Part shown: piece after piece, positions 4,967 through 22,383 of the stretch
Layout of the letters: each line of letters opens with the position of its first letter
Position numbering within the stretch: position 1 is the first letter of the stretch
IMG/VR virus record: IMGVR_UViG_3300025536_000010
Span: 62,001-126,000 of that record
DNA length: 64,000 nt
Strand: one strand, 5' to 3'
The notes under the pieces: generated by a model
Told to the model about the DNA's origin: nothing
Seen by the model: the letters and a program-made list of their open reading frames with translations, nothing else
Databases searched by the model: none
Program-made: the position numbers and the translations under genes

Positions 4967-7900
4967 GTGGCTGGACTGCTGGCCGATTTCCCCAAGCCGA
5001 AAGCGCCAGCGCTGGACCTGCCCCAGACGAAGGCGCAGTCGATCTTGTCCAGCGGGCCGTTGACGGCCCCGCCTACCCCCGCGCCGCAAATGCGGGAGTT
5101 CGGCGATGCGCGCCTCACGCGCCAATACATCTACGAGGACGCCCTGAACGCCGCCCGCAACATCGAACCCATCGAAGACGAACGCTACCGCCTGCGGCTG
5201 GCCGACGTGGACTGGGCCGACCCGGAACGCTTCACGCGCAAGCAGCGCAAAGCGGCAATCCTGGCCGGCGACACGCTGGCTCGGCGCCTGCGCGGCAGCT
5301 GGGTATTGGAGGACGTTGCCACGGGTAAGGAGATCCAACGGCGCGCCCAGATCGTCGGCCGCATTCCTTACCTGTCCAGCATGGGCACGTTCGTCCACAA
5401 GGGGAACGAATACACCGTCAACCACCAGCAGCGATTGCGGCCCGGCGTCTTCGCCCGCGTCAAAGACAACGGCGAGATCGAGAGCCATGTCAACGTACTG
5501 CCGGGTAAGGGCGTCTCGCACCGCTACTTTCTGGACCCGGAGAAGGAACTGTTCAAGCTGCGGCTCGGACAGGCCGAGATGCCGCTGCTGCCGCTAGTCC
5601 AGGCCCTCGGCGCCACCGACAAGGAAGTCCGCGAGGCGTGGGGCGACCAGCTGTTCGCGGCCAACTACAAGCACCTGGACAGCGGCCAGACTATCAAGAA
5701 GCTGGCCGCGCGCCTGCTGCGCCGCGCCGACCAGGGTTTAGACGAAGGCACGACGCGGCAACGGCTGGCCGATACGATCAACCGTATGGAACTGGACCCG
5801 GAGGTCACCAAGCGCACGCTGGGCCAGCCGTACGCCAACCTAAACAAAGAAGTTATCCTCAACGCCACTAAAAAACTGATCCAGGTCAACCGCCGCGAAG
5901 TTGACCCCGACGACCGCGACAGCCTGGCCTACCAGCAATTCTTCGGCCCCGAAGACCTGTTCGCCGAGCGCCTGCGGCGGGACCACGGTAACCTGCGGAA
6001 ACAGCTGTTCAGGAAGATCGCCCTGGCCGGCAACCTGGACAAGATGCCCAGCGGCGCGCTGACGCCCCAGGTCGAGCAGGTGCTGCTCGGCAGCGGGCTC
6101 GCGCAGGCACTCGAAGAGATCAACCCGGCCGAAGTCTTCGATAAGCAGAGCCGTATCACGCGCATGGGCGAGGGCGGTATCCCAAGCCTAGACGCGATCC
6201 CCGACGAAGCCCGCGCCGTACAGCCGTCGCACATGGGTTTCATGGACCCGCTGCGGACACCGGAGAGCTTCCGCGTCGGCGTCGACCTGCACATGGCGCG
6301 CAGTTCGCGCAAAGGCCGCGACGGCCGCATCTACACGAGCCTCCGCGACCAGCAAGGGAACATGGTTTGGAAGTCCCCGCAGGACGTGGCTGAGGCAAGC
6401 ATCGCTACGCCGGACGTGCTCAAATGGGACACGAAGCGCGTGCCGGTGATGAAGGGAGGCAAGCTGGCCTATGTTCCGAAGAATGAAGTGGATTTTGTCC
6501 TACCTAACTTCGAGGACTCGTTTTCGCCGCTTGGTAACATGGTGCCGCTCAAGAGCATGGTCAAAGGCCAGCGCGTCGCAATGGCCAGTCGCATGCTCAC
6601 CCAGGCCCTCCCCCTCACCGCCGCCGAGGCTCCGCTTGTACAATCCGGCTTGCCTGGCAGTAAGGGCGCCCGGAGCTTCGAGGAAGAATACGGCAAGCAC
6701 ATGGGAGCAGTGGCGGCTGATTCGGACGGACGGGTCGTCGATGTCCGTGACGGAGTTATTAAGCTCAAGTACAACGACGGCCGCACCGACGAGGTCGAAC
6801 TCTACGAGAACCACCCGTTCAACCGGAAGACCTACATCAACCAGACCGCGGTAGTAAAACCAGGCGACGCGATTACGAAAGGACAGCTGCTGGCTCACAG
6901 CAACTACACCGACAAGACCGGGGCGACGGCGCTGGGCACAAACCTGAACGTCGCCTACTGGCCCTACCTGGGTTACAACTTCGAGGACGCGGTGGTGATC
7001 TCGGAGAGCGGGGCCAAGAAGATGTCCTCCGAGCACATGTACCAGCACGACTTGGAGGTCACGGACAAGCACAAGATCGGGAAGCGGCATTACGTCAACC
7101 TCTTCCCCGGTAAGTTCGACAAGAAGGCGTACGAGAACCTGGACGACGACGGCATTGTTCGGCCCGGCACCGTCGTCAACCACGGTGACCCGCTCATCCT
7201 GGCTGCGCGGCAGAAAGAGTTCGCGCAGAACAAGATCCACAAGAAAAAACAGGCAGGGTACGGCGATGAGTCTCTACTGTGGAAGCATCACGATCCTGGG
7301 GTTGTTACCGACGTCGTGTGGGGCAAAAACGGGCCTGTCGTCCTGGTTAAGTCCCAGTCTCAAATGCAAGTCGGCGACAAGCTCTCCGGCCGTTACGGCG
7401 ATAAAGGAGTGGTCGCGGCCATCGTCCCCGACAGCCAGATGCCGCACGGTCGGGACGGTAACCCCTTCGAGCTTCTCCTGAACCCGCTGGGCGTCATCAG
7501 CCGCACCAACCCGGCACAGAAAGTCGAGGCTCAGCTGGGCAAGATCGCGCGCTTGACCGGCAAGCCCGTCAAGGTGCCCGATTTCGAGGACGAGGAAGAC
7601 CTGACGGCCTGGGCACAAATGCAGCTGCGGATGCACGGCCTCAAGGACACCGAAGACATCGTCTGGCCCGAGAAAAACATGAAGGTGCCAGGCATCCACT
7701 CCGGTACGCGCTTCTTCATGAAGCTGCACCACACCGCCGAATCCAAAGGCCAGGGTCGCGGCGGTGGCTCCTATTCGATGGACGACACGCCGGCTAAAGG
7801 TGGCGCACAGGGTTGTTTCCTGGCCGGCACGCACCTGCATACGGCTGAGCACGGTTTTCAGGACATCGCCCGCATCGTCGGCCGGCGCATGCCTGTCAAA

Positions 7901-8113
7901 GTGCTGACTCGGCGGCCGGGCGGCGTACACCAGCAGTGGCTGCCGGTCACGGACTGGTTCCACTACCGGGTCGACGCAAACGCACTGGTGACGCTGCGGC
8001 TTGGTAACGGCCGGGAGATCCACGTCACCAGGAACCACGAGTTCGTCATGGCAGACGGCACGCGGAAACTGGCGGGCGACCTGGTCGCGGGCGACGACCT
8101 GATGGAGGTTTGA
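4967..8113 (+). CDS. rpoB: Phage RNA polymerase beta subunit (N-extein, 949 aa) fused to N-terminal split-intein half
   Basis: RpoB motifs GTFVHKGNEYTVNHQQRLRPGVF, HMGFMDPLRTPES, GYNFEDAVVIS, GDKLSGRYGDKGVV, LNPLGVISRTN, FMKLHH; ends in an intein-like CFLAGT...VTRNH. Confidence 0.93.
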   Translation: MAGLLADFPKPKAPALDLPQTKAQSILSSGPLTAPPTPAPQMREFGDARLTRQYIYEDALNAARNIEPIEDERYRLRLADVDWADPERFTRKQRKAAILAGDTLARRLRGSWVLEDVATGKEIQRRAQIVGRIPYLSSMGTFVHKGNEYTVNHQQRLRPGVFARVKDNGEIESHVNVLPGKGVSHRYFLDPEKELFKLRLGQAEMPLLPLVQALGATDKEVREAWGDQLFAANYKHLDSGQTIKKLAARLLRRADQGLDEGTTRQRLADTINRMELDPEVTKRTLGQPYANLNKEVILNATKKLIQVNRREVDPDDRDSLAYQQFFGPEDLFAERLRRDHGNLRKQLFRKIALAGNLDKMPSGALTPQVEQVLLGSGLAQALEEINPAEVFDKQSRITRMGEGGIPSLDAIPDEARAVQPSHMGFMDPLRTPESFRVGVDLHMARSSRKGRDGRIYTSLRDQQGNMVWKSPQDVAEASIATPDVLKWDTKRVPVMKGGKLAYVPKNEVDFVLPNFEDSFSPLGNMVPLKSMVKGQRVAMASRMLTQALPLTAAEAPLVQSGLPGSKGARSFEEEYGKHMGAVAADSDGRVVDVRDGVIKLKYNDGRTDEVELYENHPFNRKTYINQTAVVKPGDAITKGQLLAHSNYTDKTGATALGTNLNVAYWPYLGYNFEDAVVISESGAKKMSSEHMYQHDLEVTDKHKIGKRHYVNLFPGKFDKKAYENLDDDGIVRPGTVVNHGDPLILAARQKEFAQNKIHKKKQAGYGDESLLWKHHDPGVVTDVVWGKNGPVVLVKSQSQMQVGDKLSGRYGDKGVVAAIVPDSQMPHGRDGNPFELLLNPLGVISRTNPAQKVEAQLGKIARLTGKPVKVPDFEDEEDLTAWAQMQLRMHGLKDTEDIVWPEKNMKVPGIHSGTRFFMKLHHTAESKGQGRGGGSYSMDDTPAKGGAQGCFLAGTHLHTAEHGFQDIARIVGRRMPVKVLTRRPGGVHQQWLPVTDWFHYRVDANALVTLRLGNGREIHVTRNHEFVMADGTRKLAGDLVAGDDLMEV
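7814..8110 (+). other. Split intein N-half (IntN, 99 aa)
   Basis: Block A Cys1 (CFLAGT), block B TxxH (VTRNH), ends LAGDLVAGDDL then stop; no C-terminal Asn. Confidence 0.9.
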
Positions 8114-8116
8114 GTC

Positions 8117-10030
8117 ATGGAAGACCTTGGAGTCTTGGCGGCGAAAGCCGCTACGCTGCGCGTGAAACTGGCAAACGTGGCGGCCTTGGCGGCTTCGCCG
8201 GCCGGCGAGAGCGCACTCGCGCGCCTGGGCGGTTGGCTGTCCGGCAAAGCATTCAAGCCGGTATCGCAGATGGCTCGTCCGCAGTTCGGCACGCTTAACG
8301 CGCTTGGTGAAGAAGCGCAGGCGCTGGCGCGCCAGCAGCGCATGAGCCGGCTGACTCTAGGCTTATCCGACAAGCCGTACTTCCATGTTCAAGATCGTGT
8401 TGGTGGCGGCTTAGCCGGTGCCTGGCTCGGTGCGTACGCAGACAGTAAAGTGAACGGCGAGGTCAACGACCTCTCCAGTGCCGGGCGCCGTGCGGCAGCG
8501 GTGCTCGGCGGCGGTTATCTGGGCGGTAAAGGCGCGAACTCGGCTTTGAACGTCGGCCGCAAGTTTACAGCGAACACGTCGCCGCTCATGGGTTACGACA
8601 CGGCTTTGATTCCGAAAGTGTCGCTCAAGTCTATCTGGAACCACGGCGTCATGGACCGCCCAATGGGCGGCATCGCGCGCGGCGGTAGCGGCAGTGAGGC
8701 TAACCCGCGCTACGAACTGCTGCGGCGCTATCTCGGCATTCACAAGAACGACGCGGCCAAAGACATGTTCATCTCGAACGCGGACAAGTCGCTGTCGTTC
8801 AACCCGGCAGTCGTAAAGCCTGGCTCGAAAACATGGCAGCAGTACATTGACCCAGGGCGGCAAGACAGCAGCCTGGGTGTCCGATTCAGCGAGGGCCTCA
8901 AGAACCCACCCAAGCTCGAAGTACCCAATAGCGCCCCGCCCAAGCTCGAAGTATCCGGCAACGCCCCGGCCAAGAGTCTCATTCTTCCGGGCGCTAACCC
9001 GGAACCGCCGCGCAGCGTTTTGCTGGGCGGTGGCCAGCCGACAGGGCCGGCTAAAAAGCTGATCCTGCCGGGACAGGAACCAAACGCACCTGCACCGGCG
9101 CTGGTCATGCCCGGTCAAGGTCAAGCGCCCAGACCTGCGCCGAAGCCAGCGGCCCCGGAGAAAACGTACAGCCTCAACGAGGGCGACCTGGCTAACCCAC
9201 CTGGGTACAGCGTCGACCAGAAGAACAACCCGTTCAACAATCTGTTCGGCTCGCACGACATGCGCCACGTCCAGGGCTCTGTTGAGCGCTTGCCGGGCGG
9301 CAAGTTCCGCACCTCGCACGAGCTAGGTGACACCTGGAACTTCCGTCTCGACCCGCACGAGACGCCAGAAGCCGCTGCTTACCTCAAAGGCATGGCTGGC
9401 ACGTCGCCTAACCGCTGGGGCGAGTTCCTCAAGCAGAAGGCGGACATCGGACACGCCAGTGCCTACGGCGGCCCGGATAAAACAGTGAGCGACCGGCTCA
9501 AGAACTACGGCATGCGCAGTGTCATCGAAGCGGCAGCACAGAAAGAAGCTCCGGTCATTCGGCAACGTATGCGCTTCACTTACGAGGCACCTACCGAAGC
9601 CAACGCGGCTTTCGCCAAGGCGACTGGCGGAGTAGCGCCGAGCGAGATCGAGTTGTTGTCGTCCAACGTCGCCGGGCCTGCCGTGCTTAGCCCCGAACGT
9701 CAGCAAATGCTGCGGCGGCTGCTTGGCGGCAGTGCAGTCGCGGGCACCGGCGGCCTTTACGCGAGCGGCCAGCTACCGAGCAAAGACACGCCCCAGGCTG
9801 CAACGCCACAGCCGCAGCCGCTAACGCCAAAACAAGAGGCACCTGCGTCGAAGACGTGGCGACCACGGGGACGAGAAGCACTATCGGCTTTCTTCCGCAA
9901 GCCGAAGTCTGAGCTATCTACTCGGCAGAAAATGATCCGCGGTGTCACCGACCGCGCGGCCGGCGGCATCCGCAGCTTCTGGGACCGTATGCAGCAGCGT
10001 TATGGCGGCAGTGGAGGGCTCGGAGCGTGA
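8117..10030 (+). CDS. Hypothetical 637-aa protein between the split-intein halves
   Basis: GGAGG SD; stop overlaps the next start (GTGA); N-terminal AKAA/VKLA, Gly zippers, Pro-rich repeats; no LAGLIDADG, HNH or GIY-YIG motif seen. Confidence 0.8.
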   Translation: MEDLGVLAAKAATLRVKLANVAALAASPAGESALARLGGWLSGKAFKPVSQMARPQFGTLNALGEEAQALARQQRMSRLTLGLSDKPYFHVQDRVGGGLAGAWLGAYADSKVNGEVNDLSSAGRRAAAVLGGGYLGGKGANSALNVGRKFTANTSPLMGYDTALIPKVSLKSIWNHGVMDRPMGGIARGGSGSEANPRYELLRRYLGIHKNDAAKDMFISNADKSLSFNPAVVKPGSKTWQQYIDPGRQDSSLGVRFSEGLKNPPKLEVPNSAPPKLEVSGNAPAKSLILPGANPEPPRSVLLGGGQPTGPAKKLILPGQEPNAPAPALVMPGQGQAPRPAPKPAAPEKTYSLNEGDLANPPGYSVDQKNNPFNNLFGSHDMRHVQGSVERLPGGKFRTSHELGDTWNFRLDPHETPEAAAYLKGMAGTSPNRWGEFLKQKADIGHASAYGGPDKTVSDRLKNYGMRSVIEAAAQKEAPVIRQRMRFTYEAPTEANAAFAKATGGVAPSEIELLSSNVAGPAVLSPERQQMLRRLLGGSAVAGTGGLYASGQLPSKDTPQAATPQPQPLTPKQEAPASKTWRPRGREALSAFFRKPKSELSTRQKMIRGVTDRAAGGIRSFWDRMQQRYGGSGGLGA

Positions 10031-10149
10031 AAATAACTTCGGTAGAACCGTTCGCCGGCACTGCGGATCTGGAGGGGAAGGTGGACGTCTACGACATTAC
10101 CGTCGCGGACCTCCACCTTTACGGCGTCTACGGAGTGCTGGTGTCCAAC
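10027..10149 (+). other. Split intein C-half (IntC, 41 aa)
   Basis: MKITS...VYDITV..LH.Y...GVLVSN followed by +1 Ser (10150); same architecture as cyanobacterial DnaE IntC (MIKI...VYDIGV..DHNF....ASN). Confidence 0.9.
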
Positions 10150-11787
10150 AGCAAGCGCGTGGCCATGCTGGACACCAACGCCCTGCTGTCGCACGGGGCC
10201 ACGGAAACGCTGCGTGACGTCCGCCTGATTCGCGGCCAGGGCCGAGCCAGTGAGAACTACTGGCTCCAGTTCATGATGGGTTACACGCCGGTCGACCCCA
10301 AGGTGCCGCAGACGCACGAGAAGTTCGTCAACCAGCTGAAAGCCTCTGGCATCAACGTGGTCCGCGACGGCTACCAGATGAACGTCATGGCCCTGACCAA
10401 CCGGGACGTGGACACCCTGGCGTCCGACCGCATCATCAAGAGCGGGGACACCGTGCGCTTCGACAAGGAACTCAAACCGATCCCGGGTGGCCTGTTCGAT
10501 CCCACGCTCACCGGCGGACACAACGGTAAGCGCTGGGCGGCTATCGAACTGCCCGAACCGATGCCCAACCCGGTCATGGAGGAGCCGATCCGGCGCATGC
10601 TGAACCTGACCCAGAAACAGTTCAGCGCCGTCCTGGCGGGCGAGCACGAACTGCCTAGCTTCGGCAGCGGCCCCAAAGCGATCACCCAGGCCCTGGAGAA
10701 CATCAACCTGGAACGCGAGTTGGCCAAAGCCAAGGCCGAATACACCCACGGACGCGGTACAGCCCGCGACGCTGCGCACCGGCGCTGGCAGTATCTCGAC
10801 GGCGCCCAGAAGCGCGGTCTGCATCCCAAAGATTGGATACTGAACCGCGTGCCAGTGCTGCCGCCGGCCTTCCGCCCGGTCAGCGTCATGGGGGACTCCG
10901 GCGTACCCCTGGTGTCGGACCCCAACTACCTCTACAAGGAGTTGCTCGACGCCAACAAGAATTTCACGGACATGGTCAAGCAGGTGGGGGACAAGAACGT
11001 CGGCAACGAGCGGCTGGCGGTCTACAACTCGTTCAAGGCGGTTACCGGCCTGGGCGAGCCTGTTCACCCCAAGCTGATCGAGAAAAACGTGAAAGGCATT
11101 CTCAAATCCGTTTTTGGAACCTCGCCGAAGTTCGGCACGGTGCAGCGGAAACTGCTGTCCTCGACCGTCGACAACGTGGGCCGCTCGGTCATTACGCCGA
11201 ACCCTGACTACGATATGGACACCATCGGCGTGCCCGAGAACCAGGCGTTCGACGTCTACTCGAAGTTCATCGTCCGCCGCCTGCGCCGCCGGGGCCTACC
11301 GATCCGCGAGGCTCTCAAGCACGTCCGCGACAAATCGGGCCTGGCCCGGGACGTTCTCCAGGAAGAGATGGACAACCGGCCGGTCTATGTCAACCGGGCT
11401 CCGGTGCTGCACAAATTCGGTATCATGGCCTTCCGCCCGCGGTTGATTAAGGGGGACGTCCTCCAGGTCAGCCCGTTGATCGTCAAAGGCTTCAACGCTG
11501 ACTTTGACGGGGACGCCATGCAGTTTCACGTCCCGTCGTCCGATGAAGCGGTCAAGGAAGCCTACGAGCGGATGCTGCCCAGTCGCTCGCTGCTTAGCCC
11601 GGCCGATTTCAAAAGCCCGGTCCACGCTCCTGGCCAGGAGTACCTGGGCGGGCTCTACTACGCGACGCGCCAGCGTGAGGAAGACAAGCAGCGGCGGCCC
11701 CGCGTGTTCCGTTCCGTAGCCGACGCCAAGAAGGCGCACCAGCGCGGCGAGATCACAGCGGACACGCCGATTCAGATCATGGAGTAA
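10027..11787 (+). CDS. rpoC: C-terminal split-intein half + RNAP beta C-terminus + catalytic N-half of beta'
   Basis: After the IntC: SKRVAMLDTNALLSHGA...QLKASGINV (beta end), then GGLFDP, VPVLPPAFRP, NRAPVLH, FNADFDGDAM (11494-11514), GLYYAT. Confidence 0.93.
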   Translation: MKITSVEPFAGTADLEGKVDVYDITVADLHLYGVYGVLVSNSKRVAMLDTNALLSHGATETLRDVRLIRGQGRASENYWLQFMMGYTPVDPKVPQTHEKFVNQLKASGINVVRDGYQMNVMALTNRDVDTLASDRIIKSGDTVRFDKELKPIPGGLFDPTLTGGHNGKRWAAIELPEPMPNPVMEEPIRRMLNLTQKQFSAVLAGEHELPSFGSGPKAITQALENINLERELAKAKAEYTHGRGTARDAAHRRWQYLDGAQKRGLHPKDWILNRVPVLPPAFRPVSVMGDSGVPLVSDPNYLYKELLDANKNFTDMVKQVGDKNVGNERLAVYNSFKAVTGLGEPVHPKLIEKNVKGILKSVFGTSPKFGTVQRKLLSSTVDNVGRSVITPNPDYDMDTIGVPENQAFDVYSKFIVRRLRRRGLPIREALKHVRDKSGLARDVLQEEMDNRPVYVNRAPVLHKFGIMAFRPRLIKGDVLQVSPLIVKGFNADFDGDAMQFHVPSSDEAVKEAYERMLPSRSLLSPADFKSPVHAPGQEYLGGLYYATRQREEDKQRRPRVFRSVADAKKAHQRGEITADTPIQIME

Positions 11788-11795
11788 CACCTGCC

Positions 11796-11825
11796 TTGTC
11801 CGGCCACGCCGGAGTAGGCTACACT
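11796..11825 (+). promoter_or_regulatory. Possible sigma70-type promoter
   Basis: TTGTCC-N18-TACACT in the intergenic gap before 11867. Confidence 0.3.
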
Positions 11826-11866
11826 ATACCCGCAGTACGGATACCAACAAGGAAAGGGAGTTCCGC

Positions 11867-12604
11867 ATGAGCACCCCTTCGCACGGCGATCACCTGGTCA
11901 ATCTCGAAGTCATCAGGATGGCACGTCAACAGCTTGGCGGCTTCCAGAAACAAGCCTTCATCCCAGCTAGCGACCCCGGCATGGGAGCCGGCGGTGGCGG
12001 CGGTGGTGGCGGGGGCGGCGCTCCTCCAATGGACCCCGCGATGATGGGCGGCGGCGGGGGCGGCGCTCCTCCGCCCGATCCTGCCGCTGGCGGCGGTGGC
12101 GGTGGCGGCGGTGGTGGGCTCGATCCCATCATGCAAATGATGACGCAGATGCAGCAGCAGATCCAGCAGCTGACCCAGGGCGGCGGCGCGGGCGGCGGCG
12201 CGGGCGGCGCGCTGAAACCCAAAATCGACGTCAACGTCGAGATGATGCAGATCAAGAACATGCTCGCCAAGATCTGCGACCACCTCGGCATTCAGATCCC
12301 GGCCCAGGACATGGTCGCCACGCCTGAGAAGCTCATGGCGATGTCCCAGGGGCAGTCGGCGGCTTCGCCTCCTGGCACGGGGGCCGGCGGCGCAGGGGCT
12401 GGCGGTGCGGGTGCCGGGGCCATCCCGCCGATGGACCCGATGCAGGGCATGCAGCCCGCCGGCTCGCCTGGCGGCGAGAAGATGGGGGCGCACCGTCCCT
12501 ACAGAGCCAACGGGCAAGCCTACGACGGAACTGCTCTGGCGTCGGGCCTGGGCGAAACGCACAATCGGGCCGCGGCAATCATGCGGCTGCGTCAGGCGGC
12601 ATAA
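11867..12604 (+). CDS. Gly/Met/Pro-rich low-complexity protein (K-x-A motif)
   Basis: QKQAF near N-terminus; poly-Gly runs with MDP/APP motifs. Confidence 0.75.
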   Translation: MSTPSHGDHLVNLEVIRMARQQLGGFQKQAFIPASDPGMGAGGGGGGGGGGAPPMDPAMMGGGGGGAPPPDPAAGGGGGGGGGGLDPIMQMMTQMQQQIQQLTQGGGAGGGAGGALKPKIDVNVEMMQIKNMLAKICDHLGIQIPAQDMVATPEKLMAMSQGQSAASPPGTGAGGAGAGGAGAGAIPPMDPMQGMQPAGSPGGEKMGAHRPYRANGQAYDGTALASGLGETHNRAAAIMRLRQAA

Positions 12605-12607
12605 CTC

Positions 12608-12934
12608 ATGGCTATGATCGTCGAGATTATCCCGGAAGGCGGTATCGGTCGGCGGGATGCCTTGGTTGTCCCGGCGTCCCAGATCATCATCCGCCAAGAC
12701 GACGGCACTCCGCTCATGGTCGCCGCCGTTTACGGCCCCGAGGGCGCCATCGCCTGCGGGTCAGTCAGCCACGATGAAGAGGAGTTCAACCGCTTCCTGC
12801 GGATGCTCAACATTCACCAAACCGTCATGGTGCAACGGATCAAGATGCCACCACCGCCGCCCGGGGCCAGGCTCGTCGCCGGCCCTAAGAGCCCTAGCCT
12901 CACGCACAAAAAGGAGATCATCCTTGGCAAGTGA
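12608..12934 (+). CDS. Hypothetical protein
   Basis: 108-aa ORF abutting both neighbours. Confidence 0.65.
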   Translation: MAMIVEIIPEGGIGRRDALVVPASQIIIRQDDGTPLMVAAVYGPEGAIACGSVSHDEEEFNRFLRMLNIHQTVMVQRIKMPPPPPGARLVAGPKSPSLTHKKEIILGK

Positions 12935-14132
12935 ACTTCCTGGCGGCCAACGCCGCCGACGCCCGGCCGTCGACCGCACGCGCGTCCGTACAGCCGATGA
13001 GTATTACAAGAGCGGCGACGTGTCCGCCGTCCAGGGCGGCAACACCGCGGCCGACAGCACGCTCAAGCCGGGCCAGGCGCCGGTGCCTGCGGCCGCGCGG
13101 CGGAAACCGGCGTCCGACCGCAGCCGCGTCCGTTCGGCCGACGAGTATTACAAGGCACAGGACCAGGCCCCGACTGCCGAACAGATCAGGGCCGGGCAGG
13201 TCCGTGACCCTCGCCGTCTTGGCCCACCACCGCAGCTGGGCGCGCCGCAGGCGCTGCCGGCCAAGCAGCCACGGTTGCCCAAGCCGGGGCGCCAACGGCC
13301 CGAACTGCTCATCACCCAGGCGGACGAGATCAACGGCGTCATGCAGGAAGTCGTCAGCCGCCTAAGCATGGGCGAGCAGCGCGTGATCGTCTACGTCGCC
13401 AAGGGGCAGGTGCCCCTGCTGCGGCGCGCCAGAACCAATCTGGAACTGCTGGTGACCCGCGAGGTCATCACCGAGGACCAGGCGCGTGACGTGACCTTCT
13501 CCTACGAGCAAGGCGAGGAGGCCAAAAAGGCCATCGACGCCAAGCTAGGAGCCGCGCCGACTTTCGAGAGCCAGCCCACAGTCAGTGTCGACGCCAAAAA
13601 GGCGGCTGACACGGAGATCGACCCGCTGGCCTTCCTCAACGGTGAGGGCGACGACCCGGACGACCCGAAGATCGACGTCTCGCCAGTTGCCGAGCAGGAT
13701 CAGGTCGAGGTCGACACGTCGAACGATCCAGACGCCAAACCGGACGTCGATGACGACGACGGCGCGGACAATACTTTCCTCAACCCGGAGAACAAGGAAG
13801 CCGCGGCGTTCTCGATTCCGTTCAACAAGCTGCCCGAGAATCTGATAATCGACCCGAACAAGCCGGGCGTCATGGGCGTTGACCCGGCCGCGCCGGAAGG
13901 CGACCGCACCGTGGTCGAGGTTCAGCAGCCCGAAGAGACGGTCGTGCAGGTCACCTCGGGCAACCTGCAACCCATGCAGCAGATGGAAGGCGCCGGCGAC
14001 AAGGGCGAAGACGTGCCGAACCTGGGCAGCCACATCGAGGCCCCAACCGAGGCGATGGAGGGTGTCGGCGACGCCCCCAAGCCGCAGCAGCAATACCGTC
14101 GCGGCGGTCGACGCTCCGGTCGCGGCTCGTAA
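12924..14132 (+). CDS. Hypothetical acidic protein with duplicated DRxRVRxADEYYK motif
   Basis: TTG start 12924 after AAGGAG SD, in frame with the listed 12657 ORF. Confidence 0.7.
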   Translation: MASELPGGQRRRRPAVDRTRVRTADEYYKSGDVSAVQGGNTAADSTLKPGQAPVPAAARRKPASDRSRVRSADEYYKAQDQAPTAEQIRAGQVRDPRRLGPPPQLGAPQALPAKQPRLPKPGRQRPELLITQADEINGVMQEVVSRLSMGEQRVIVYVAKGQVPLLRRARTNLELLVTREVITEDQARDVTFSYEQGEEAKKAIDAKLGAAPTFESQPTVSVDAKKAADTEIDPLAFLNGEGDDPDDPKIDVSPVAEQDQVEVDTSNDPDAKPDVDDDDGADNTFLNPENKEAAAFSIPFNKLPENLIIDPNKPGVMGVDPAAPEGDRTVVEVQQPEETVVQVTSGNLQPMQQMEGAGDKGEDVPNLGSHIEAPTEAMEGVGDAPKPQQQYRRGGRRSGRGS

Positions 14133-14216
14133 GAGTCCTCCTTTCGGCGGGCGTGGGTTACAAAGGATTGTGGCCCACGTCCGTTTTCTAAAAGCCAGTT
14201 TTGAGGGAGGGAGCCC

Positions 14217-14627
14217 GTGTTCGATACCATCCGCTCTTGGTGGCGAGGCGTCCCCAAACACGAAGTCAAAGAGGTCGAGTGGGGGCGACGGATCGCCAAG
14301 GCGCTCACGACCTACGGCCTGGCCACCCGCGACGAGGTCCGCATCTTCGACGGCACGCGCATCGACCTGCTTACGCCACACCATGCCGTCGAGATCGACT
14401 GGGCGCCGAAGTGGGCTGAGGCCATCGGACAGTCGCTCTACTACGGCGTCCGGTCCAAAAAGCAGGCCGTTGTCCTCCTGCTGCTGTGCGACTCCCGCGA
14501 CGAGGCGTATATCGTCCGCTGCCGCGCGGTCTGCACTACGAATACGCCCAAGATTCCGATTTGGCTGCTCAACACCAAGAGCCGTGTTTTGTACCTCGCG
14601 GACGGACAGACGATCACGGTGGAGTAA
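14217..14627 (+). CDS. PD-(D/E)xK-like nuclease
   Basis: E...DGTRIDLLT...AVEID...KWAEAIGQSLYY, a restriction-endonuclease-fold pattern. Confidence 0.6.
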   Translation: MFDTIRSWWRGVPKHEVKEVEWGRRIAKALTTYGLATRDEVRIFDGTRIDLLTPHHAVEIDWAPKWAEAIGQSLYYGVRSKKQAVVLLLLCDSRDEAYIVRCRAVCTTNTPKIPIWLLNTKSRVLYLADGQTITVE

Positions 14628-17600
14628 TGCTCAAAACCACGATGGGGCAGCTGCTTGTCAATGACTCGCTGCCCGAAGACCTGCGCGATTACGGGCGCAT
14701 CCTCGACAAAAAGGGGATGGCGACCTTGCTGCGCACCGTGGCCGAGAAATACCCGGACCAGTACCGCGACGTCTCGAAGAAGCTGGCCGACATCGGCCGC
14801 AACGTCGCCAGCGAGTTTGGTGGCAACAGTTTCGGGCTGGCGCACATGGCCAAGTCCGGCCTGGGGCAGCAGTACCAGAAGAACTTGCAGGCGAAGCTCA
14901 AGCAGATCCTTGACGATGACAACCTGGACGACGCTAAGCGGCAGGAGTTGATCGTCAAAGCGGCGGGCATGGACCGCGAGAAGCAGATGAAGTCGATCCT
15001 GGAAGAGGCCATCAAAAACAAGAACCCGCTGGCCTCCCAGGTGATCTCCGGTTCGCGCGGCAACGAGATGAACCTGGCCTCGCTGCTGGACTCCGACCGG
15101 CTGTACTCCGACCACCGGGATCAGCCGCTGGCCATCCCTATCGTCCACAGCTACAGCCAGGGCCTGCGGCCCATCGAATACTGGGCTGGCACCTACGGCG
15201 CCCGCAAGGGCGTCATGGCGACCAAGTTTGCCACCCAGGACGCCGGCTTTTTGAGCAAGCAGTTAAACCAGGTCGCCCACCGTCTGATGGTGGTGGACGA
15301 GGACGACCCGCGCTACGAAGGCGACCCGACACCGCGCGGCTTGCCGGTAGACACAGACGACCCCGACAACGAAGGGGCGCTGCTGGGCATGGACGTTGGC
15401 CCGTACAAGCGGAACACCGCGCTGACTCCCAAAATTCTCAAGGACTTGAAAAGGAGGGGACATGCTCGCCTTCTTGTCCGAAGCCCGGTGGTGGGCGGCA
15501 GTCCTGATGGTGGTATTTACGCACGGGATGTTGGTGTGCGTGAACGTGGCACTCTTCCTGGTCGCGGTGAGCAGGTTGGACTCACCGCTGCCCAGGCGCT
15601 GTCGGAGCCGCTGTCGCAGGGGCAGCTGTCGGCTAAGCATTCGGGCGGCGTCGCGGGGCAGGAGAAAGCGGTCGGCGGCTTCCAGTACATCAACCAGCTG
15701 ATTCAGGTGCCCAAGGTGTTCAAAGGCGGGGCGGCGCACTCAAACGAGGACGGCAGCGTCGAACGGATCGAGGAAGGTCCGGCCGGTGGCCAGTTCGTCT
15801 GGATCAACGGCAAGCGGCACTACGTCGGCGAGGGTTTTGAGTTGAAGGTGAAACCTGGCGACCAGGTCGAGGCTGGTGACCTGATCTCGGAAGGTCTGCC
15901 CAACCTGAACGTCGTTGTGGACCATAAGGGACGTGGCGAGGGCGCACGCTATTTCGTCAACTCGTTCGTGGACGCGATGCGCGGGGCCGGGCTCAAGGTC
16001 AACCGGCGCAACGTGGAAGTGCTGGCTCGGGGGCTTATCAACCATGTCCGACTCACCGACGAGTTCCAGGGCAACCTGCCCGACGACGTTGTCCCCTACA
16101 GCACCCTTGAGCACCTCTACGAACCACGCGAGGGTCACCAGACTCTACGAACTGAGCGCGCTTTGGGACAATACCTTGAGCGCCCAGTTCTACACTACAG
16201 CATCGGCACGAAGGTCCGCCCTTCGGTCCTTAAAGAGCTTCAACAGTTTGGTATTAAGGAAGTTGCTGTTCACGCAGAGCCGCCTCCGTTCAAGTCCGAG
16301 ATGATCCGTGGTATGTACTCCCTCCAGCACGACCCGGATTGGATGACCCGCATGTACGGCTCCGGCCAGAAGTCGAGCCTGCTGGAGGCGGTTCACCGTG
16401 GCCGCAGTTCCAACGAACTCGGCACCAGTTTCGTGCCCGGTCTGGCTCGCGCCGAAGAGTTCGGGCGCGTGGGCCAGGTACGCCAGCCGCTACCCGGCAC
16501 GAAGCCGCCGCTCATCGAGCCCGTCACGGAGGACGAGGAGATGCCCAAGAAGAAGCCAACGACGCCGCCGACTTCGCCGATCGCGCTGAACCTCCAGCCG
16601 CCCAAGACCCCCGCACCCAAGAGCATGTTCGGCGGCATGGGGTCCATTTTCAAGCTCTCCTGTGACGCCCTAGAACAGCGGCGGGAGGCCGAGATCCTGC
16701 TGGAGAAAGCTGCTAAGCGGATCGAACAGGTTCGCCAGGCCACAGCCAAGACCAAGCAGACGCAGCAGGTGAAAGCCAGCGCACCTTTGCAGCCTGTTCG
16801 ACGCGCGCAGCAGATCAAGACGGCCGAAACGAACATCGGCAGCAGCACCGTCACGGCTGGTGGCACGACGATCAAGCCGAGCAGTCAGGGCAGCGCAGCA
16901 CCGAAACCGCCCACACCGGCAGCACCGCCAGGCGGGGACGCCTGGAGCGGTCCGCGCGGACCCGCCAACCCGACTTTCGGCGTCGGCCGCAATCCGCACG
17001 CGCTGGGCCAGGGTGGCTACAACCCGGGCATGCCGTCCGGCATCGTCAACGACCCGGAAGCGTTCTCCCGCTTCGTTGACAGCAGCCAACGATTCGGCGG
17101 GTTGACCGGCGGGGCTGTTGCTTTCGGCTCTGGCCTCGACCAGAACGCCGTGGCCACGCTGACCAACCAGAGTCCCTACGTCAAAGGGCACTACGGCTAC
17201 AGCGAGTTCGACCGGCCCACGCCGCCAGGTTACCACCCCGGCATCGGGCGCCCCGGCATGCGCGGCGGCCAACCTGGCAGGTACGGAGGCCACCCCGGTA
17301 TGCAGGACGCTGACGGCATGGACTTCGACGGTGGCTACCCCGGTTTTGACCCCTGGCAGGATCAAGGCGGGCAGCAGCAGACTCAACAGCAGGCGCCACC
17401 GCAGCCCGGTTTCGGCGCGGGCGACATGCTCCAGATGGCTCCCGGCATAACGTCTATGGGCTCCACTGGCGCGCAGCTGGGCGGGCTAGCCACACGCGGG
17501 CTGGGAGCCGCAGCGAACGCCACAGGGGCCACGCGCGTCGGCGGCGCGCTGGGACGCACTGGCGGGGCGTTGGGCCGGGCCGGCGGCTTGGTCGGCAAAG

Positions 17601-18658
17601 CCGCTACGCCGCTGGCTGTAGCCGTGGACACCGGCCAGATGATCGGACATTCGATCAACGACATCAGGAACGGACAGTTTTTCGGCGGCAACGGCGAAGT
17701 AGCCCAGGGTACGCGCCGCACGATGGACGAAATGAACAACGCCACGGACCTCTCGCGCTGGACGGACCCGAACGTCAGCAAGTTCGACCAGCTGATGGAC
17801 ACGACGCACCTCATCAACCCGGTGAGCTATGCACGGTCAGCGGGTGGCGTCATCGGCGACGTGGCCAACACAGCCATCTACGACATGCCGGCCATCCTGG
17901 GCGGCGATTTCAAAGACATGACCAGGCTAGAGTCGTCGTCGAACATCGGCAAGCACTTCGAGTCCCAGCAGAAGATCCAGCAGATGCTCTCCGACGACCA
18001 GCACAAAAAGACCCTGGCCGGCAAACAGGACGGTATCAACCCGTTCCAGTTCACGCCGCATTTCGACCCGAACAAGGACGCACTGACCAACACCTACAAC
18101 AGCCTGACGCGCTCGAAGAACCCGCTTGCCAACGTCATCGGCACCGCCCAGGATCTGCACACGTCCGTCTCGACCATGAAAGGCCAGACCGAGGGCCAGG
18201 CTCGCGGTTTCGAGCAGATCATGTCCGACCGCCGAGCCGCGAACGAGCAGCGGGCGACGCAGCTGCGCGACCTCAAGGGTAAAGGTTTCGCCCTGTCGCC
18301 GGAGGAACAGGCCATCGTCGCCAAGGCCGACGCCGACCGCAACAAGACGGAGGCCCAGCTGGTCCTGGAGGCATCCGGGTTCAAGCCAGGCGATACGAAT
18401 ACCGCGCTGTACATGACGATGGGGCACAAGTCGATCAACCCATTCGATGGCGAGCAGCGCGCCAGCGCCCTCAACCCTGTCTCCGGTCGCCGCTTGGCCG
18501 AGGAAGCGCAGACGGCCATCGACCACGGCGACACCGGCCAGCGTGTCGCCGGGCACGCCGTCAAGGACTTCACGAGCCCGGTGGCTAGCTGGGAACAGAT
18601 CCGCAGCGGTGACTTCCGCGTGCCCGGGTGGAACAGCGTTAAGTCGCTGTGGGACTAA
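14627..18658 (+). CDS. rpoC: RNAP beta' C-terminal half fused to a long low-complexity extension
   Basis: Starts MLKTTMGQLL; SGSRGN; bridge helix GARKGVMATKFATQDAGFLSKQL; trigger loop AAQALSEPLSQGQLSAKHSGG; RRNVEVLARG; RNAP homology ends near 16470. Confidence 0.9.
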   Translation: MLKTTMGQLLVNDSLPEDLRDYGRILDKKGMATLLRTVAEKYPDQYRDVSKKLADIGRNVASEFGGNSFGLAHMAKSGLGQQYQKNLQAKLKQILDDDNLDDAKRQELIVKAAGMDREKQMKSILEEAIKNKNPLASQVISGSRGNEMNLASLLDSDRLYSDHRDQPLAIPIVHSYSQGLRPIEYWAGTYGARKGVMATKFATQDAGFLSKQLNQVAHRLMVVDEDDPRYEGDPTPRGLPVDTDDPDNEGALLGMDVGPYKRNTALTPKILKDLKRRGHARLLVRSPVVGGSPDGGIYARDVGVRERGTLPGRGEQVGLTAAQALSEPLSQGQLSAKHSGGVAGQEKAVGGFQYINQLIQVPKVFKGGAAHSNEDGSVERIEEGPAGGQFVWINGKRHYVGEGFELKVKPGDQVEAGDLISEGLPNLNVVVDHKGRGEGARYFVNSFVDAMRGAGLKVNRRNVEVLARGLINHVRLTDEFQGNLPDDVVPYSTLEHLYEPREGHQTLRTERALGQYLERPVLHYSIGTKVRPSVLKELQQFGIKEVAVHAEPPPFKSEMIRGMYSLQHDPDWMTRMYGSGQKSSLLEAVHRGRSSNELGTSFVPGLARAEEFGRVGQVRQPLPGTKPPLIEPVTEDEEMPKKKPTTPPTSPIALNLQPPKTPAPKSMFGGMGSIFKLSCDALEQRREAEILLEKAAKRIEQVRQATAKTKQTQQVKASAPLQPVRRAQQIKTAETNIGSSTVTAGGTTIKPSSQGSAAPKPPTPAAPPGGDAWSGPRGPANPTFGVGRNPHALGQGGYNPGMPSGIVNDPEAFSRFVDSSQRFGGLTGGAVAFGSGLDQNAVATLTNQSPYVKGHYGYSEFDRPTPPGYHPGIGRPGMRGGQPGRYGGHPGMQDADGMDFDGGYPGFDPWQDQGGQQQTQQQAPPQPGFGAGDMLQMAPGITSMGSTGAQLGGLATRGLGAAANATGATRVGGALGRTGGALGRAGGLVGKAATPLAVAVDTGQMIGHSINDIRNGQFFGGNGEVAQGTRRTMDEMNNATDLSRWTDPNVSKFDQLMDTTHLINPVSYARSAGGVIGDVANTAIYDMPAILGGDFKDMTRLESSSNIGKHFESQQKIQQMLSDDQHKKTLAGKQDGINPFQFTPHFDPNKDALTNTYNSLTRSKNPLANVIGTAQDLHTSVSTMKGQTEGQARGFEQIMSDRRAANEQRATQLRDLKGKGFALSPEEQAIVAKADADRNKTEAQLVLEASGFKPGDTNTALYMTMGHKSINPFDGEQRASALNPVSGRRLAEEAQTAIDHGDTGQRVAGHAVKDFTSPVASWEQIRSGDFRVPGWNSVKSLWD

Positions 18659-18725: not shown

Positions 18726-19715
18726 ATGAACAAGGAAGTTATTGCCCAGATCGGGCTCGCGGCCGGGCTTCTCCACAAGAACGCCGGGTTCGATCTGCGT
18801 TCGATGGCAAACCTGTTCGGCCGTGGGGCCAAGGCGGTCGGCCACCAGGCCACCGGCCTGAGCCGCACGGTGACGCCGCAAATCTCGCAGGTCGGCAACC
18901 GCACGGTCGGCACGCTCAAGCCGGGCTGGGGCTTCAACGCCGCCAAGCCCATCCAGACGGCCGCAGGTGTGGGCGCTGCCGGCGTCGGCGGGGCGATGGC
19001 GCACCAGAACCTCTCCGAAAGGGCCTTCTACGAGGGCAAGAGCGGCTTCAACCCCTACACCTGGGGCCAGGACGCTCCCAGCCACGAAGAGTTGTTCCAG
19101 CGCAACCAGAACCGTTTCAACGAGATGGCCCAGCCGCTGGTCGACCAGCAGGAAGCCGCGCGCGGCAAGAACGACATGGGCGAGTACAATCGCCTCCAGG
19201 AGCAACTCGAACGCGGCAACTTCGGTGGCACCTTCCGTTTCGGCTTCGGCCAGAGCAACGCCAGCCGTTTCATGGGCAACGCCCAGGGCGCGCAGAAAGC
19301 TCGCCAGGGCGAGTACAACAAGGAGATGGCCGCAGTCGGCCCCCAGGCCGGCGACGACCAACTGCTCCAGTCGTTGCGGCAGCGACTGTCTTCCGGTAAC
19401 CTGCTGCCGGTGCAGGCCGCGAGCCTCCAGAAGCAAATGGAACACGTCCAGAAGCGGATGTCGCAGACGCCGGGCACCGAGACGGCCGCCGCCACGGCCA
19501 TCGCCCAGAAGATGCGCGGCGCGGGTATGCGGCACACGCCCTACGAAGTACCAGGTGGTAGTCCGTCGCCGTTCCCGATGCCGGCCGCTGGGCATTGGCA
19601 GCTGGGCGGGCGGCCGATGAACCCAGGCTTCGTGCAAGGTTGGAACCTGAACCCGAACGACCACCGGCAGTCCCCCGACATCAACAGCGTCTGGGAGAAT
19701 GTCCTGGCGCGCTAA
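18726..19715 (+). CDS. Hypothetical Gly/Gln-rich virion-type protein
   Basis: AAGGAG SD; LHKNAG near the N-terminus. Confidence 0.72.
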   Translation: MNKEVIAQIGLAAGLLHKNAGFDLRSMANLFGRGAKAVGHQATGLSRTVTPQISQVGNRTVGTLKPGWGFNAAKPIQTAAGVGAAGVGGAMAHQNLSERAFYEGKSGFNPYTWGQDAPSHEELFQRNQNRFNEMAQPLVDQQEAARGKNDMGEYNRLQEQLERGNFGGTFRFGFGQSNASRFMGNAQGAQKARQGEYNKEMAAVGPQAGDDQLLQSLRQRLSSGNLLPVQAASLQKQMEHVQKRMSQTPGTETAAATAIAQKMRGAGMRHTPYEVPGGSPSPFPMPAAGHWQLGGRPMNPGFVQGWNLNPNDHRQSPDINSVWENVLAR

Positions 19716-19743
19716 GTCAAGGACGACAAAAGGGAAGGAACCC

Positions 19744-22383
19744 ATGCAGGCCACCCAAAAGCCGTTTTTTGAAAAGCGGGCCACGGCGTTCGGCACCTAT
19801 TATGTGTCGTCTCTGCCAAAACTGGCCATCGCGCAGTACCTCCGCGAACGGTCGCTGTGTCGCATCAAGGAGGCGTCGCTCGGCGGCGACCAGGAGCAGG
19901 GCTTCGAGCAAGCCTTCTCGTCGCTGGCGTATGCCTACTTGAAAGACAAAAGCCCCCGCTTGCTGGACTTCATTGTGGGCTTTCAGCTGGTCGACCGCAA
20001 CGAAGACAACACGAAGGCGATGGGCGTCTTCGGTTTCAAGGTCGGCGATCAGTGGCTGTACGCGCCCGTTTTCTTCCTCAACGGCGACTTGAAGGGCCAC
20101 GAACTCCTGTACATCAAGAAACAGGATGCTTTCGTGCCCATGAAGGAGAACTGGGTCAACTACCTGATCTCCCGCAAGCCGCACACCCTGGGCGAAGGCA
20201 GCGAGCAGAACACGTTCGAGTTGGGCGGCCTCATGCCCAACATCTCGAAGCTGTCGCGGCTGCCCGGCGGCAGCAAGTACGGCTCGGACGGCGCAGCCAC
20301 CATGCCGGTCCACATCGACGACTGGGCCAAGCCGGCCCTGCCGCTCCTTATGGCCCTGGCCACGAAGAAAGCCCGCGCGCTTTACCCGGACATGGTCAAA
20401 GACGCCACCGACCTGAATTTCAAGTCGTTGGTGGGCAGCCCGGTGCGCGCGGCTCTGGCACCGTTCGCCGAGAACTTCGACCTGAACAAAGCGCTGACGC
20501 ACCCGACGCTGCTCAAGGTCGCCCGGCAGCTGTACGACGCCTACCCGCTCATCAAGGCGGGCTTCGACCGCTTCTACGGAGCAGACTTCTTCCCCAAGAT
20601 GGAGAAGCTGGCCCGCGACACGGCGGACAGCCTGGTCACCAAGGCGGCCGGGTCGTTCGTTGTGCCGCCCAAGCCGTACAAGAAAAAGCGGAAGGCGTCG
20701 CCGTTTCTGATCGAAGACCCCGAGCCCAAAAAGGCGTGGGACAAGAACGCCGAGATCACCGTTATCGCCCTGGACGTCGACAACGACGTGCCCATCACGG
20801 TCAACAAGAAAGAGTTGACCGAGGAGGAGCGGGCGCGGCTGCTGCGCGACACCGTCCTCATCAAGGACGAACGCGACCCGCACGGCGACAAAACCAGCAT
20901 CGCCTACAACACCCAGGTCCGCATGGAACTGGTCAACCCGAGCGAAACCGGCATCTACGAGGTGCTGGAAAAGCCGGGCTCTTTCGACAAGATGCTTATC
21001 ATCGCGGCCCCACACTCCGGGCGCGGGCAAGAGGACCATTGCGTTCTGATCCGCAAGGGTTCTCCCAGGAACTGGATCAACGCACACCGCACGACATTGT
21101 GGGCGAAGCAAACGGACGCCCCGACGCGCAAGGAGTGGGACGATTGGTACGAGTCGCTCAGTGGCACCAGCAGCCTGGAAAAGGGCGGCGTCTATGTTGC
21201 CGTCAACAAGAGCGGCTCGGGCACCTGTCCGTTCCGCGTCCGCGAGAACTACGGCGACGGCGTCTACCGGGTGGAGTGGAAAGACTACTGCTCCTACAAC
21301 CACGGCCGTCCGTCCTCGCTGCCGAAAATCGACCGGCCGCACGACTGGGAGATTGGCTACAGCGGCTGGGACGCCAAGCTGTACATCAACAAGCGCAAGG
21401 GCTCGAAGCTGCGCGTGGTCAACGGCGAGATGACTGTCCCCGAGGACTTCAAAATCATCACGGTGGCCAAGCCGCCGCCACCGCCGAAAAAGGACAAGAG
21501 CCTGGTCGACATGTGCTGTTCGTCGGAGTCGAGCAGCCGCGCCGAGGGCAGCGACGAGCGGCCGATCCAGCCAGGCAACCTGGCTGACGTCCAGATCATG
21601 CTCCAGAAGAACGCCCACGTCGTCAAGCTACACGACACCGGGGCCAGCGAGGTCTGGCTCAAGAGCCGGCGCGGCGACGAGCGTATGTCGAAGAAGGCAG
21701 CGCTCATCAGCCTGGTCCGCGATCACGGTACGAGCGAACACCAGGCCCGCGAGATGCTCAAGCAAGCCACCGTGGCGGCTGTCCACGGGCGGCCGGCGAC
21801 TTTCTACGTCAAGTACGCCCAGGGCTTCGGGCTCCAACCGGGGCCGAACGCCCCGCCGTTCCCTGAGCCCGAAATGGGCATGGAGCAGCACGGCTACAAC
21901 TCCACGCAGGCCATCTACCCGCAGGAGGAGTACCAGCCGGTCGACGAGATGTCGAGTCAGCTGACGGACCAGTCGATCTACGACCCCTTCTACACGCCGG
22001 ACCAGCAGGCGATGCAGGTCGCCCAGCAGGCATCGTCCAGCGGCCAGAAGGAGGTCTTCGACACGGCGATGATCTCGGGCATGCTCAAAGCCGTGCGCCA
22101 GGATAGCCTGGTGGATCGCTACTTGGGCGACCTGATGAAGGCCCTCGATAAGCTGGGCCGCATCCTGTTCATGTTCTACTGGCACTCGGAAGAGTTCGAG
22201 GATCGCTACGGCAAGCAAGACTTGCCCGAACTGGAAGACTCGCTGCGGAACGCCTTCGAGGTGTTGGGCGATGTCTGCCTCTTCCTCCAGGAGAAAACCG
22301 TTAAGGGCGCGACCGGCATGATGTCCGGCGTCGGCAACCCTGGCAAGGGCGAGCCCAGCGTGGAAGAGGCCGCCCGCAACTAA
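19744..22383 (+). CDS. Large hypothetical head-module protein (879 aa)
   Basis: ATG 19744 after GGAAGG; multiple K-x-A motifs (EKRA, IKEA, TKAA, QKNA, VKYA). Confidence 0.8.
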   Translation: MQATQKPFFEKRATAFGTYYVSSLPKLAIAQYLRERSLCRIKEASLGGDQEQGFEQAFSSLAYAYLKDKSPRLLDFIVGFQLVDRNEDNTKAMGVFGFKVGDQWLYAPVFFLNGDLKGHELLYIKKQDAFVPMKENWVNYLISRKPHTLGEGSEQNTFELGGLMPNISKLSRLPGGSKYGSDGAATMPVHIDDWAKPALPLLMALATKKARALYPDMVKDATDLNFKSLVGSPVRAALAPFAENFDLNKALTHPTLLKVARQLYDAYPLIKAGFDRFYGADFFPKMEKLARDTADSLVTKAAGSFVVPPKPYKKKRKASPFLIEDPEPKKAWDKNAEITVIALDVDNDVPITVNKKELTEEERARLLRDTVLIKDERDPHGDKTSIAYNTQVRMELVNPSETGIYEVLEKPGSFDKMLIIAAPHSGRGQEDHCVLIRKGSPRNWINAHRTTLWAKQTDAPTRKEWDDWYESLSGTSSLEKGGVYVAVNKSGSGTCPFRVRENYGDGVYRVEWKDYCSYNHGRPSSLPKIDRPHDWEIGYSGWDAKLYINKRKGSKLRVVNGEMTVPEDFKIITVAKPPPPPKKDKSLVDMCCSSESSSRAEGSDERPIQPGNLADVQIMLQKNAHVVKLHDTGASEVWLKSRRGDERMSKKAALISLVRDHGTSEHQAREMLKQATVAAVHGRPATFYVKYAQGFGLQPGPNAPPFPEPEMGMEQHGYNSTQAIYPQEEYQPVDEMSSQLTDQSIYDPFYTPDQQAMQVAQQASSSGQKEVFDTAMISGMLKAVRQDSLVDRYLGDLMKALDKLGRILFMFYWHSEEFEDRYGKQDLPELEDSLRNAFEVLGDVCLFLQEKTVKGATGMMSGVGNPGKGEPSVEEAARN

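Follow-up and report, generated by a model that had tools for sequence, protein, structure and literature searches.

A phage RNA polymerase beta' subunit with a 723-residue extension behind conserved K-x-A/S sites: a candidate two-protein precursor

To our knowledge, only the phiKZ-like and AR9-like jumbo phages have virion-borne multisubunit RNA polymerases that are characterised in detail, and the group considered here is a different one, widespread and almost unstudied, of which we know a single characterised isolate, Salmonella phage Arash. The phage in question is uncultured and is represented by a 234,886-bp IMG/VR record (IMGVR_UViG_3300025536_000010) rated complete by CheckV. We analyzed bases 62001–126000 of this record (64,000 nucleotides, hereafter "the window", to which coordinates refer unless noted), which have a G+C content of ~63% and carry nearly all genes on the + strand. 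We focus on one gene (14627–18658, +) that encodes, in a single open frame of 1343 amino acids (aa), the C-terminal half of a polymerase beta' subunit (beta'C) and, in frame with it, an extension of 723 residues (aa 621–1343). Our best explanation, toward which we lean with modest confidence, is that its product is a precursor of two proteins, the polymerase carrying the extension as a passenger; the two would be separated by a cut at the joint, and both would persist.

The closest described systems resemble this locus only in part. In phiKZ-type phages (Chimalliviridae, AR9), polymerases of the same multisubunit beta/beta' type are carried in the head and ejected; they consist of five polypeptides, exist as two sets, have their propeptides at the N-terminus, and show an S/A/G-x-E motif. 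The beta subunit of the 201phi2-1 virion polymerase, for which processing varies among relatives, is shortened by the prohead protease, which removes a propeptide of 275 aa (PMC5694885). Here, by contrast, we find two polypeptides, i.e., a fusion of beta and the N-terminal half of beta' (beta'N), interrupted only by a split intein, plus beta'C; a single set in the genome; a 720-aa C-terminal appendage, which appears to be retained; and K-x-A as the motif. In N4 gp50 and other polyvalent proteins, a virion polymerase likewise lies within a giant multidomain polypeptide encoded among late genes, processing has been proposed, and the remaining parts either act in injection or encapsidation or represent effectors (Iyer et al. 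2017, PMC5512222): in gp50, an N-terminal region of 998 aa takes part in injection, and encapsidation requires a C-terminal region of 1400 aa (PMC5512222). Our gene is similarly encoded among virion (late) genes, in synteny with protease, scaffold-like, and capsid genes. However, the N4 module is a T7-like single-subunit polymerase, in most cases linked to an HExxH peptidase domain, and the only polymerase modules that the survey of polyvalent proteins reports are N4-like (PMC5512222), whereas the module here is a beta' fragment of the Rpb1_5 type, with no HExxH (zincin-like peptidase) motif in the extension protein and no recognised effector domain in the extension. By the defining features of these systems, the gene belongs to neither the phiKZ type nor the N4 type.

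The polymerase is encoded within the head module, as the earlier note on this DNA (made from the sequence alone) had proposed, since a module is conserved with Arash (OQ632216): gp206 corresponds to beta plus beta'N, gp216 to beta'C, gp218 to an 894-aa protein at 19699, gp222 to the gene at 26759–28282, and gp226, the major capsid protein, to 30989–31930 (E 1.5e-33). Arash shares the two-polypeptide polymerase (beta-beta'N fusion plus beta'C), the gene order, and K-x-A-rich head proteins; it differs in having a beta'C of 606 aa without extension, a beta-beta'N gene without intein, and a genome of 181 kb. In virion mass spectrometry of Arash, gp206 and gp216 yielded 128 and 40 unique peptides, respectively, ranking with the capsid and portal proteins, and obvious contaminants yielded 2 peptides (PMC10585845). 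Because the Arash polymerase is thus an abundant virion component, carriage of the only multisubunit polymerase of our phage in the capsid, and its delivery with the DNA, is by analogy the most likely arrangement.

The polymerase part of the gene is well delimited. The open reading frame (ORF) is open across 14486–18658, and translation likely begins with the ATG at 14627, which is preceded by GGAG, overlaps the stop of the ORF at 14217–14627, and fits the N-termini of all homologues (MLKTT.GQ). Pfam RNA_pol_Rpb1_5 matches aa 179–363, and homologue alignment assigns aa 1–620 (14627–16486, +) to beta'C: residues 1–619 are 50–70% identical to homologues and match Arash gp216 at 1e-46. Alignments to extension-less homologues reach aa 613–619 (~nt 16470–16485), so that polymerase homology ends near 16470, where it had been placed before. 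Past this point the sequence is coding, since G+C content at third codon positions (GC3) stays at 0.78–0.88 in the gene frame along the whole extension and the other two frames contain 19 and 9 stops.

An assembly or annotation artefact, i.e., a missed stop or frameshift joining two genes, was the obvious objection to such a layout, and we give it almost no weight. The long form was found in at least 1547 metagenomic protein clusters (length-restricted search, E ≤ 1e-10) from independent assemblies, which excludes an artefact of assembly; the same fused layout thus recurs in hundreds of independent assemblies, and uniform GC3, closed alternative frames, and conserved joint motifs also speak against read-through, with no point found in its support. 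Among related loci, 8 of 15 carry long forms (1060–1394 aa or more) and 7 carry short forms (636–661 aa) that end about where the long forms carry the joint.

This joint follows a plan shared by >100 long forms: the polymerase end is followed by a Pro-rich linker, the recurrent motif G-F-F-x-G-x-F-K-x-S/G, a short helix, one to three K-x-A sites and, often, a "VD[ST]T..P[NS].GSST" block. In our gene, the Pro-rich linker spans aa 621–666 (16487–16624, +), about where extension-less homologues end, and leads into MFGGMGSIFKLS (aa 667–678; 16625–16660, +), the local version of the recurrent motif, which holds the first K-x-S (FKLS, 16652, +). Next comes EKAA, in which K694-A-A within LLEKAAK (16706–16714, +) ends a predicted helix and is a candidate cleavage site; LLEKAA (aa 692–696) is conserved in relative L003, where its counterpart reads LLEKVAR. 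The following VKAS (K716-A-S; 16772–16780, +) is not kept in L003. A second candidate cleavage site is IKTA, i.e., K731-T-A followed by ETNIGSST (16817–16849, +), which immediately precedes the widely conserved block, and a further K-x-S, IKPS, lies at 16874 (+). The linker and the sites FKLS, EKAA, VKAS, and IKTA are therefore present just as first described. Taken alone, five K-x-[AS] sites within 75 aa are weak evidence, at only ~3 times local expectation; they are, however, conserved in homologues. For instance, IKTA-ETNIGSST (aa 730–741) aligns with LTKKA-EQPKVTSTVTPNTGSST of P0020, and among 25 non-redundant sequences having the GSST block, 22 have a K-x-A 7–19 residues upstream of it. 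The GSST block following K731-T-A is, on this alignment evidence, likely the start of a released product.

We then asked how K-x-A is distributed in the rest of the virion module, using conserved i/i+2 residue pairs in orthologue alignments of ten non-polymerase families. K-x-A was the most frequent pair, with 24 of 507 against ~3.7 expected given the composition of the conserved columns (the next, G-x-G, reached 13), and it accounted for only 1 of 404 conserved pairs in three polymerase cores. In most virion-module families the sites fall at aa 16–75, and the 894-aa conserved virion protein (19699–22383, +; the Arash gp218 orthologue) carries an invariant K-x-A-S-L-G-G near its N-terminus in 15 of 15 sequences. 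Genome-wide, the extended motif [LIVMF]-x-K-x-A reached 3.4–4.1 times expectation in two 10-kb bins of the head module and 2.4–2.8 times near the portal, with values of ~1 in most other bins. A scaffold-like protein (28339–29691, +) is rich in K-x-A, with 10 copies observed and 4 expected, and the scaffold-like proteins of Arash hold 7–10 copies each. In the major capsid protein (30989–31930, +), K-Q-A at aa 29–31 falls just at the border of homology with the Arash capsid protein, where it is aligned to K-E-A.

The same module encodes a homologue of a head-maturation protease (26759–28282, +), 8 kb downstream of the beta'C/extension gene. The N-terminal ~290 aa form the homologous part, followed by a C-terminal tail; a His in RNHKN and a Ser in VSMAC are putatively catalytic. 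K-x-A is conserved at two places, aa 39 and aa 460, that 47 residues before the C-terminus being present in 7 of 7 sequences. It matches gp19 of Bacillus phage G at 1e-9 and Arash gp222 at 2e-29, both of which match phrog_18299, "head maturation protease", and gp19 of phage G is listed as head maturation protease (PMC12484599). A short motif at the N-termini of many head proteins, repeated in scaffold proteins, is likewise seen in the head-protease substrates of T4 and SPN3US, whose protease also trims its own C-terminus, the counterpart here being the K-x-A near the C-terminus of the protease homologue. The motifs differ (L/I-x-E or A/S/G-x-E there, K-x-A here), as does the protease family, which is here phrog_18299/phrog_2774 and phage G gp19-like.

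Overall, we find a head-maturation-protease homologue in the module, one short motif near protein termini and dense in scaffold proteins, and the same motif at the domain boundary of the beta'C/extension protein, conserved in homologues, as in a processed precursor. The earlier note had seen a polyprotein, with the K-x-A/S sites as processing signals; both ideas draw their support from comparison, in which the statistics are strong and place a clade-wide head-module motif right at the joint. K-x-A most simply looks like the recognition site of the head-maturation protease, i.e., a clade-wide code, of which our literature search found no published description as a prohead-protease motif. Since the joint carries the signal of the group's head proteins, the polymerase and extension halves are probably separated by cleavage within the capsid. 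In phage G, the head module shows a weaker K-x-A excess (gp19, 8 against 2.3 expected; gp21, 7 against 2.9). A 1598-aa ORF outside the window (G000 11343–16139), which reads MFGGKQAED...LEKQA at aa ~757 and has 7 copies of the motif against 2.2 expected, is possibly another polyprotein with a similar joint.

The distribution of the motif within the long forms themselves points to opposite selection on the joint and on the body of the extension. For 73 non-redundant long forms, with expectations from shuffles within 25-aa blocks, K-x-A was close to expectation in the polymerase part (195 observed, 220 expected; ratio 0.88), enriched over the 150 aa with which the extension begins (123 observed, 78 expected; ratio 1.55), and strongly depleted in the rest of it (91 observed, 212 expected; ratio 0.43). 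In that same region, control patterns remained near expectation (K-A 1.05, K-xx-A 0.94, K-xxx-A 0.87, R-x-A 1.02, A-x-K 1.23), while K-x-S (0.62) and K-x-G (0.48) were also depleted; counts fell below expectation in 67 of 69 sequences. Some extension bodies are nearly free of lysine (L003 4270–6591, P0008, P0010, and P0015), with only 0.3–0.8 K-x-[AGS] expected per ~600 aa; as read from these sequences, the lysine-poor bodies are an extreme route to motif avoidance. Read most simply, the pattern means that an enzyme recognising K-x-[AGS] has access to the body, which is selected to survive it, and that the joint is selected for recognition.

These patterns bear directly on the role of the extension. 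The earlier note had proposed a capsid-targeting module, and in that version a capsid-targeting or scaffold-like propeptide would bring the polymerase into the prohead and then be degraded. Precedents exist in the capsid-targeting sequences of T4 and the polymerase propeptide of 201phi2-1, and the joint does resemble the N-terminal helix plus K-x-A of neighboring head proteins. However, Arash and seven metagenomic relatives have a beta'C without extension, and since Arash packages this short beta'C, the extension is not the capsid-targeting device of the polymerase. The purging of K-x-[AGS] from the body, moreover, fits a product that survives the protease rather than a degraded propeptide, whereas scaffold-like proteins due for degradation are full of the motif, and other relatives have enzyme-like domains at the same place. 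We therefore consider a propeptide improbable and, since relatives package the polymerase without an extension, take the polymerase to be the likelier carrier, with the extension travelling as its passenger.

A persisting product could also be one that is never released. The extension may remain covalently joined to the polymerase even in mature virions and help it in ejection, membrane docking, or encapsidation, as in N4, the joint being uncut or only partly cut. The injection and encapsidation functions of the terminal regions of N4 gp50 (PMC5512222) set an example for this, the extension does contain Gly/Ala-rich amphipathic segments, and depletion of K-x-A in the body would fit any persisting product. 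Such an arrangement is at odds with the enrichment and conservation of K-x-A/S exactly at the joint, with the block after the last site, which resembles a conserved new N-terminus (the 22 of 25 GSST blocks), and with extension-less relatives that still have a virion polymerase; we regard it as rather unlikely.

Under the two-protein explanation, the gene product would be a precursor made up of a beta' C-half of 620 residues and a separate C-terminal internal-virion protein of ~600 residues, itself ordered as a low-complexity stretch, Gly/Ala-rich amphipathic segments, and helices. The precursor would enter the prohead as a part of the polymerase, the head-maturation protease would cut the joint at K-x-A/S, and both the polymerase subunit (~70–80 kDa) and the extension protein (~64 kDa) would persist. 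Any part played by the passenger in ejection or in contact with a membrane is guesswork.

Several points weigh against this explanation. Both cleavage and packaging are read from sequence comparison only, for this phage as for its long-form relatives, the K-x-A/S sites are candidate cleavage sites, and K-x-A in the whole protein is not above expectation (7 observed, 6.4 expected), so that only clustering and conservation count. The protease is assigned by transitive sequence homology: its AlphaFold model has a predicted local distance difference test (pLDDT) score of 49, and a Foldseek search of the protease-like domain against the PDB returned no significant match, with T4 gp21 at rank 45 (E 1.9). 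A motif-reading enzyme other than this protease would yield identical enrichment and depletion statistics. As to carriage, the Arash beta'C is only ~26% identical to ours, and 116 proteins were reported for the Arash "virion" sample (PMC10585845), which makes a degree of contamination likely. Finally, the AlphaFold2 model of the extension (pLDDT 32, from a 2-row alignment) is unusable, leaving the function of the extension a guess.

With these caveats in mind, one may ask whether the polymerase is packaged at all. If it were not, the extension could be a cytoplasmic tether, assembly domain, or regulatory domain, and K-x-A a structural or other non-proteolytic signal. Virion carriage is indeed known from a distant relative, Arash, and as the genome holds one polymerase set, this enzyme must also work intracellularly. 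Yet the genes lie in the head module, in synteny with Arash, where the products occur in virions, and both the confinement of the motif to head-module bins and its pattern of enrichment and depletion tie the protein to head-module biology. We accordingly attach little credence to an unpackaged polymerase.

Past the joint, the extension is rich in Gly, Pro, and Gln, with P/G/Q/S/T/N making up as much as 67% per 60 aa, and Gly/Ala-rich amphipathic segments are present at aa ~940–1005; the earlier note had described both, calling the latter glycine-zipper helices. In hydrophobicity, all of these fall short of a classical membrane span, the best Kyte-Doolittle 19-mer scoring 1.09. A conserved block, NPHAL..GGY.PGM ... 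FGSGLD.NAVA.LT.QSPYV.GHY (aa 789–856; 16991–17194, +), is common to the W-type relatives. It is followed by a core domain (aa ~957–1137; 17495–18037, +) with Gly/Ala-rich segments and K991-A-A-T-P-L-A-V-A-V-D-T-G. A hidden Markov model (HMM) built without W-type sequences, i.e., from other extension types only, scored this core at 18.5 bits, against a maximum of 4.4 bits for local shuffles (mean -9.4, standard deviation 4.3). By this profile evidence, the core is remotely homologous to, and shared with, the extension domain of other long-form types; the link between types is seen only through the HMM with shuffle controls, hhalign among extension groups being not significant. The helix-rich C-terminal region (aa 1138–1343; 18038–18655, +) has no homologue detectable beyond L003.

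Wider searches with the extension returned little. Residues 621–1343 had no Pfam or PHROG match, the genome encodes no extension paralogue elsewhere, and a HMMER search of 1.8 billion representatives with only the extension as query returned a single relative, P0002, of the same layout and 57% identical over 950 residues. The extension domain profile had no match among PDB sequences, nor had profiles of the protease and of the 894-aa family, and look-alikes from the ESM Atlas scored <0.9 and were uninformative. We also looked for a separate extension gene in homologues, a check the earlier note had suggested: profile A5 found none in near-complete short-form genomes (88–92% complete), i.e., the tested type of extension domain is not encoded elsewhere in them. 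As a control, A5 gave one match in each of three same-type long-form records and missed L014, a long form of a different type. Two short-form loci have a separate ORF of 175–183 aa after beta'C (L008 12649–13200 and L009 12692–13219) whose plan is that of a miniature extension, with an N-terminal helix ending in LKMA, low complexity, and a Gly-rich stretch; relatedness could not be shown.

At the position of the extension, other relatives have AAA_18/AAA_33 kinase-like, acylphosphatase-like, or DUF5661 domains. More speculatively, the C-terminus of beta'C could, throughout this large and mostly uncultured phage group, be a general loading dock for varied passengers that a K-x-A-specific head protease sets free, with a single bacterial-type polymerase, intein-spliced in this phage, both injected and working intracellularly, an idea we consider possible and put forward tentatively. 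The passengers, which would enter the prohead on the polymerase subunit, might then include Gly-rich internal proteins, kinase-like P-loop, acylphosphatase-like, and DUF5661 domains, a list we offer with the same reserve. Testable predictions are a K-x-A cleavage code of the group's head protease, the polymerase subunit as a carrier of injected passengers, and an extension that survives maturation. If confirmed, K-x-A would make it possible to recognise processed head and ejection proteins directly in metagenomic sequence, and the fusion site would be a natural place to seek new host-takeover effectors.

The other polymerase polypeptide is encoded at 4967–11787 (+), with beta at 4967–8113 and beta'N at 10027–11787 by Pfam. 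Across the three ORFs, beta and beta' homologues are recognised by Rpb2_6, Rpb2_3, Rpb1_1, Rpb1_2, and Rpb1_5, and tblastn with the three polymerase parts gave self-matches only, i.e., no second set in the 234,886-bp genome. In relatives and in Arash, beta and beta'N form one protein of ~1485–1525 aa; here, the gene is fractured by a split intein, with the ORF 8117–10030 between the halves. On the N-side, beta ends ...GGAQG|CFLAGTHLH...VTRNHEF...DDLMEV*, and on the C-side beta'N begins VKITSVEPF...VYDITVAD.HLYGVYGVLVSN|SKRVAML; L004 is uninterrupted at this point (...GGSEG|SKRIGML). The two intein halves are predicted from these sequences to splice in trans. The intervening ORF encodes a Gly/Pro-rich protein of 637 aa with N-terminal AAKAA and VKLA, for which we found no endonuclease match (Pfam, PHROG) and no homologue in relatives. 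It shares the frame of beta, a single TGA and one codon preceding its ATG (8111–8119), so that read-through past the beta TGA would append this ORF to the N-terminal half of the intein; at its other end, the ORF overlaps the start of beta'N (GTGA). Large insertions also occur in the polymerase part of some beta'C homologues (L014 8201–12814, L016 5537–12283, P0014, P0029, P0034, and P0112), several of which match LAGLIDADG_3 or Hom_end_hint, and inteins therefore appear common in these polymerase genes.

Elsewhere in the genome, a Pfam search for terminase gave no match. Helix-turn-helix matches of the sigma70 region 4 kind occur in a 242-aa ORF (window 61926–62054, 18 bits) and, outside the window, in a 111-aa ORF (G000 51331–51459, 31 bits), and no match to sigma70 region 2 was found. 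An HNH/endonuclease VII-like gene lies at the window start (384–983). A 2024-aa ORF without PHROG match (52415–58489) falls in a stretch of unusually high AT skew (0.32–0.38 at 54–58 kb), and a 1306-aa collagen-like tail-fibre protein is encoded at 33977–37897, with many PHROG tail-fibre matches (best 3e-106).

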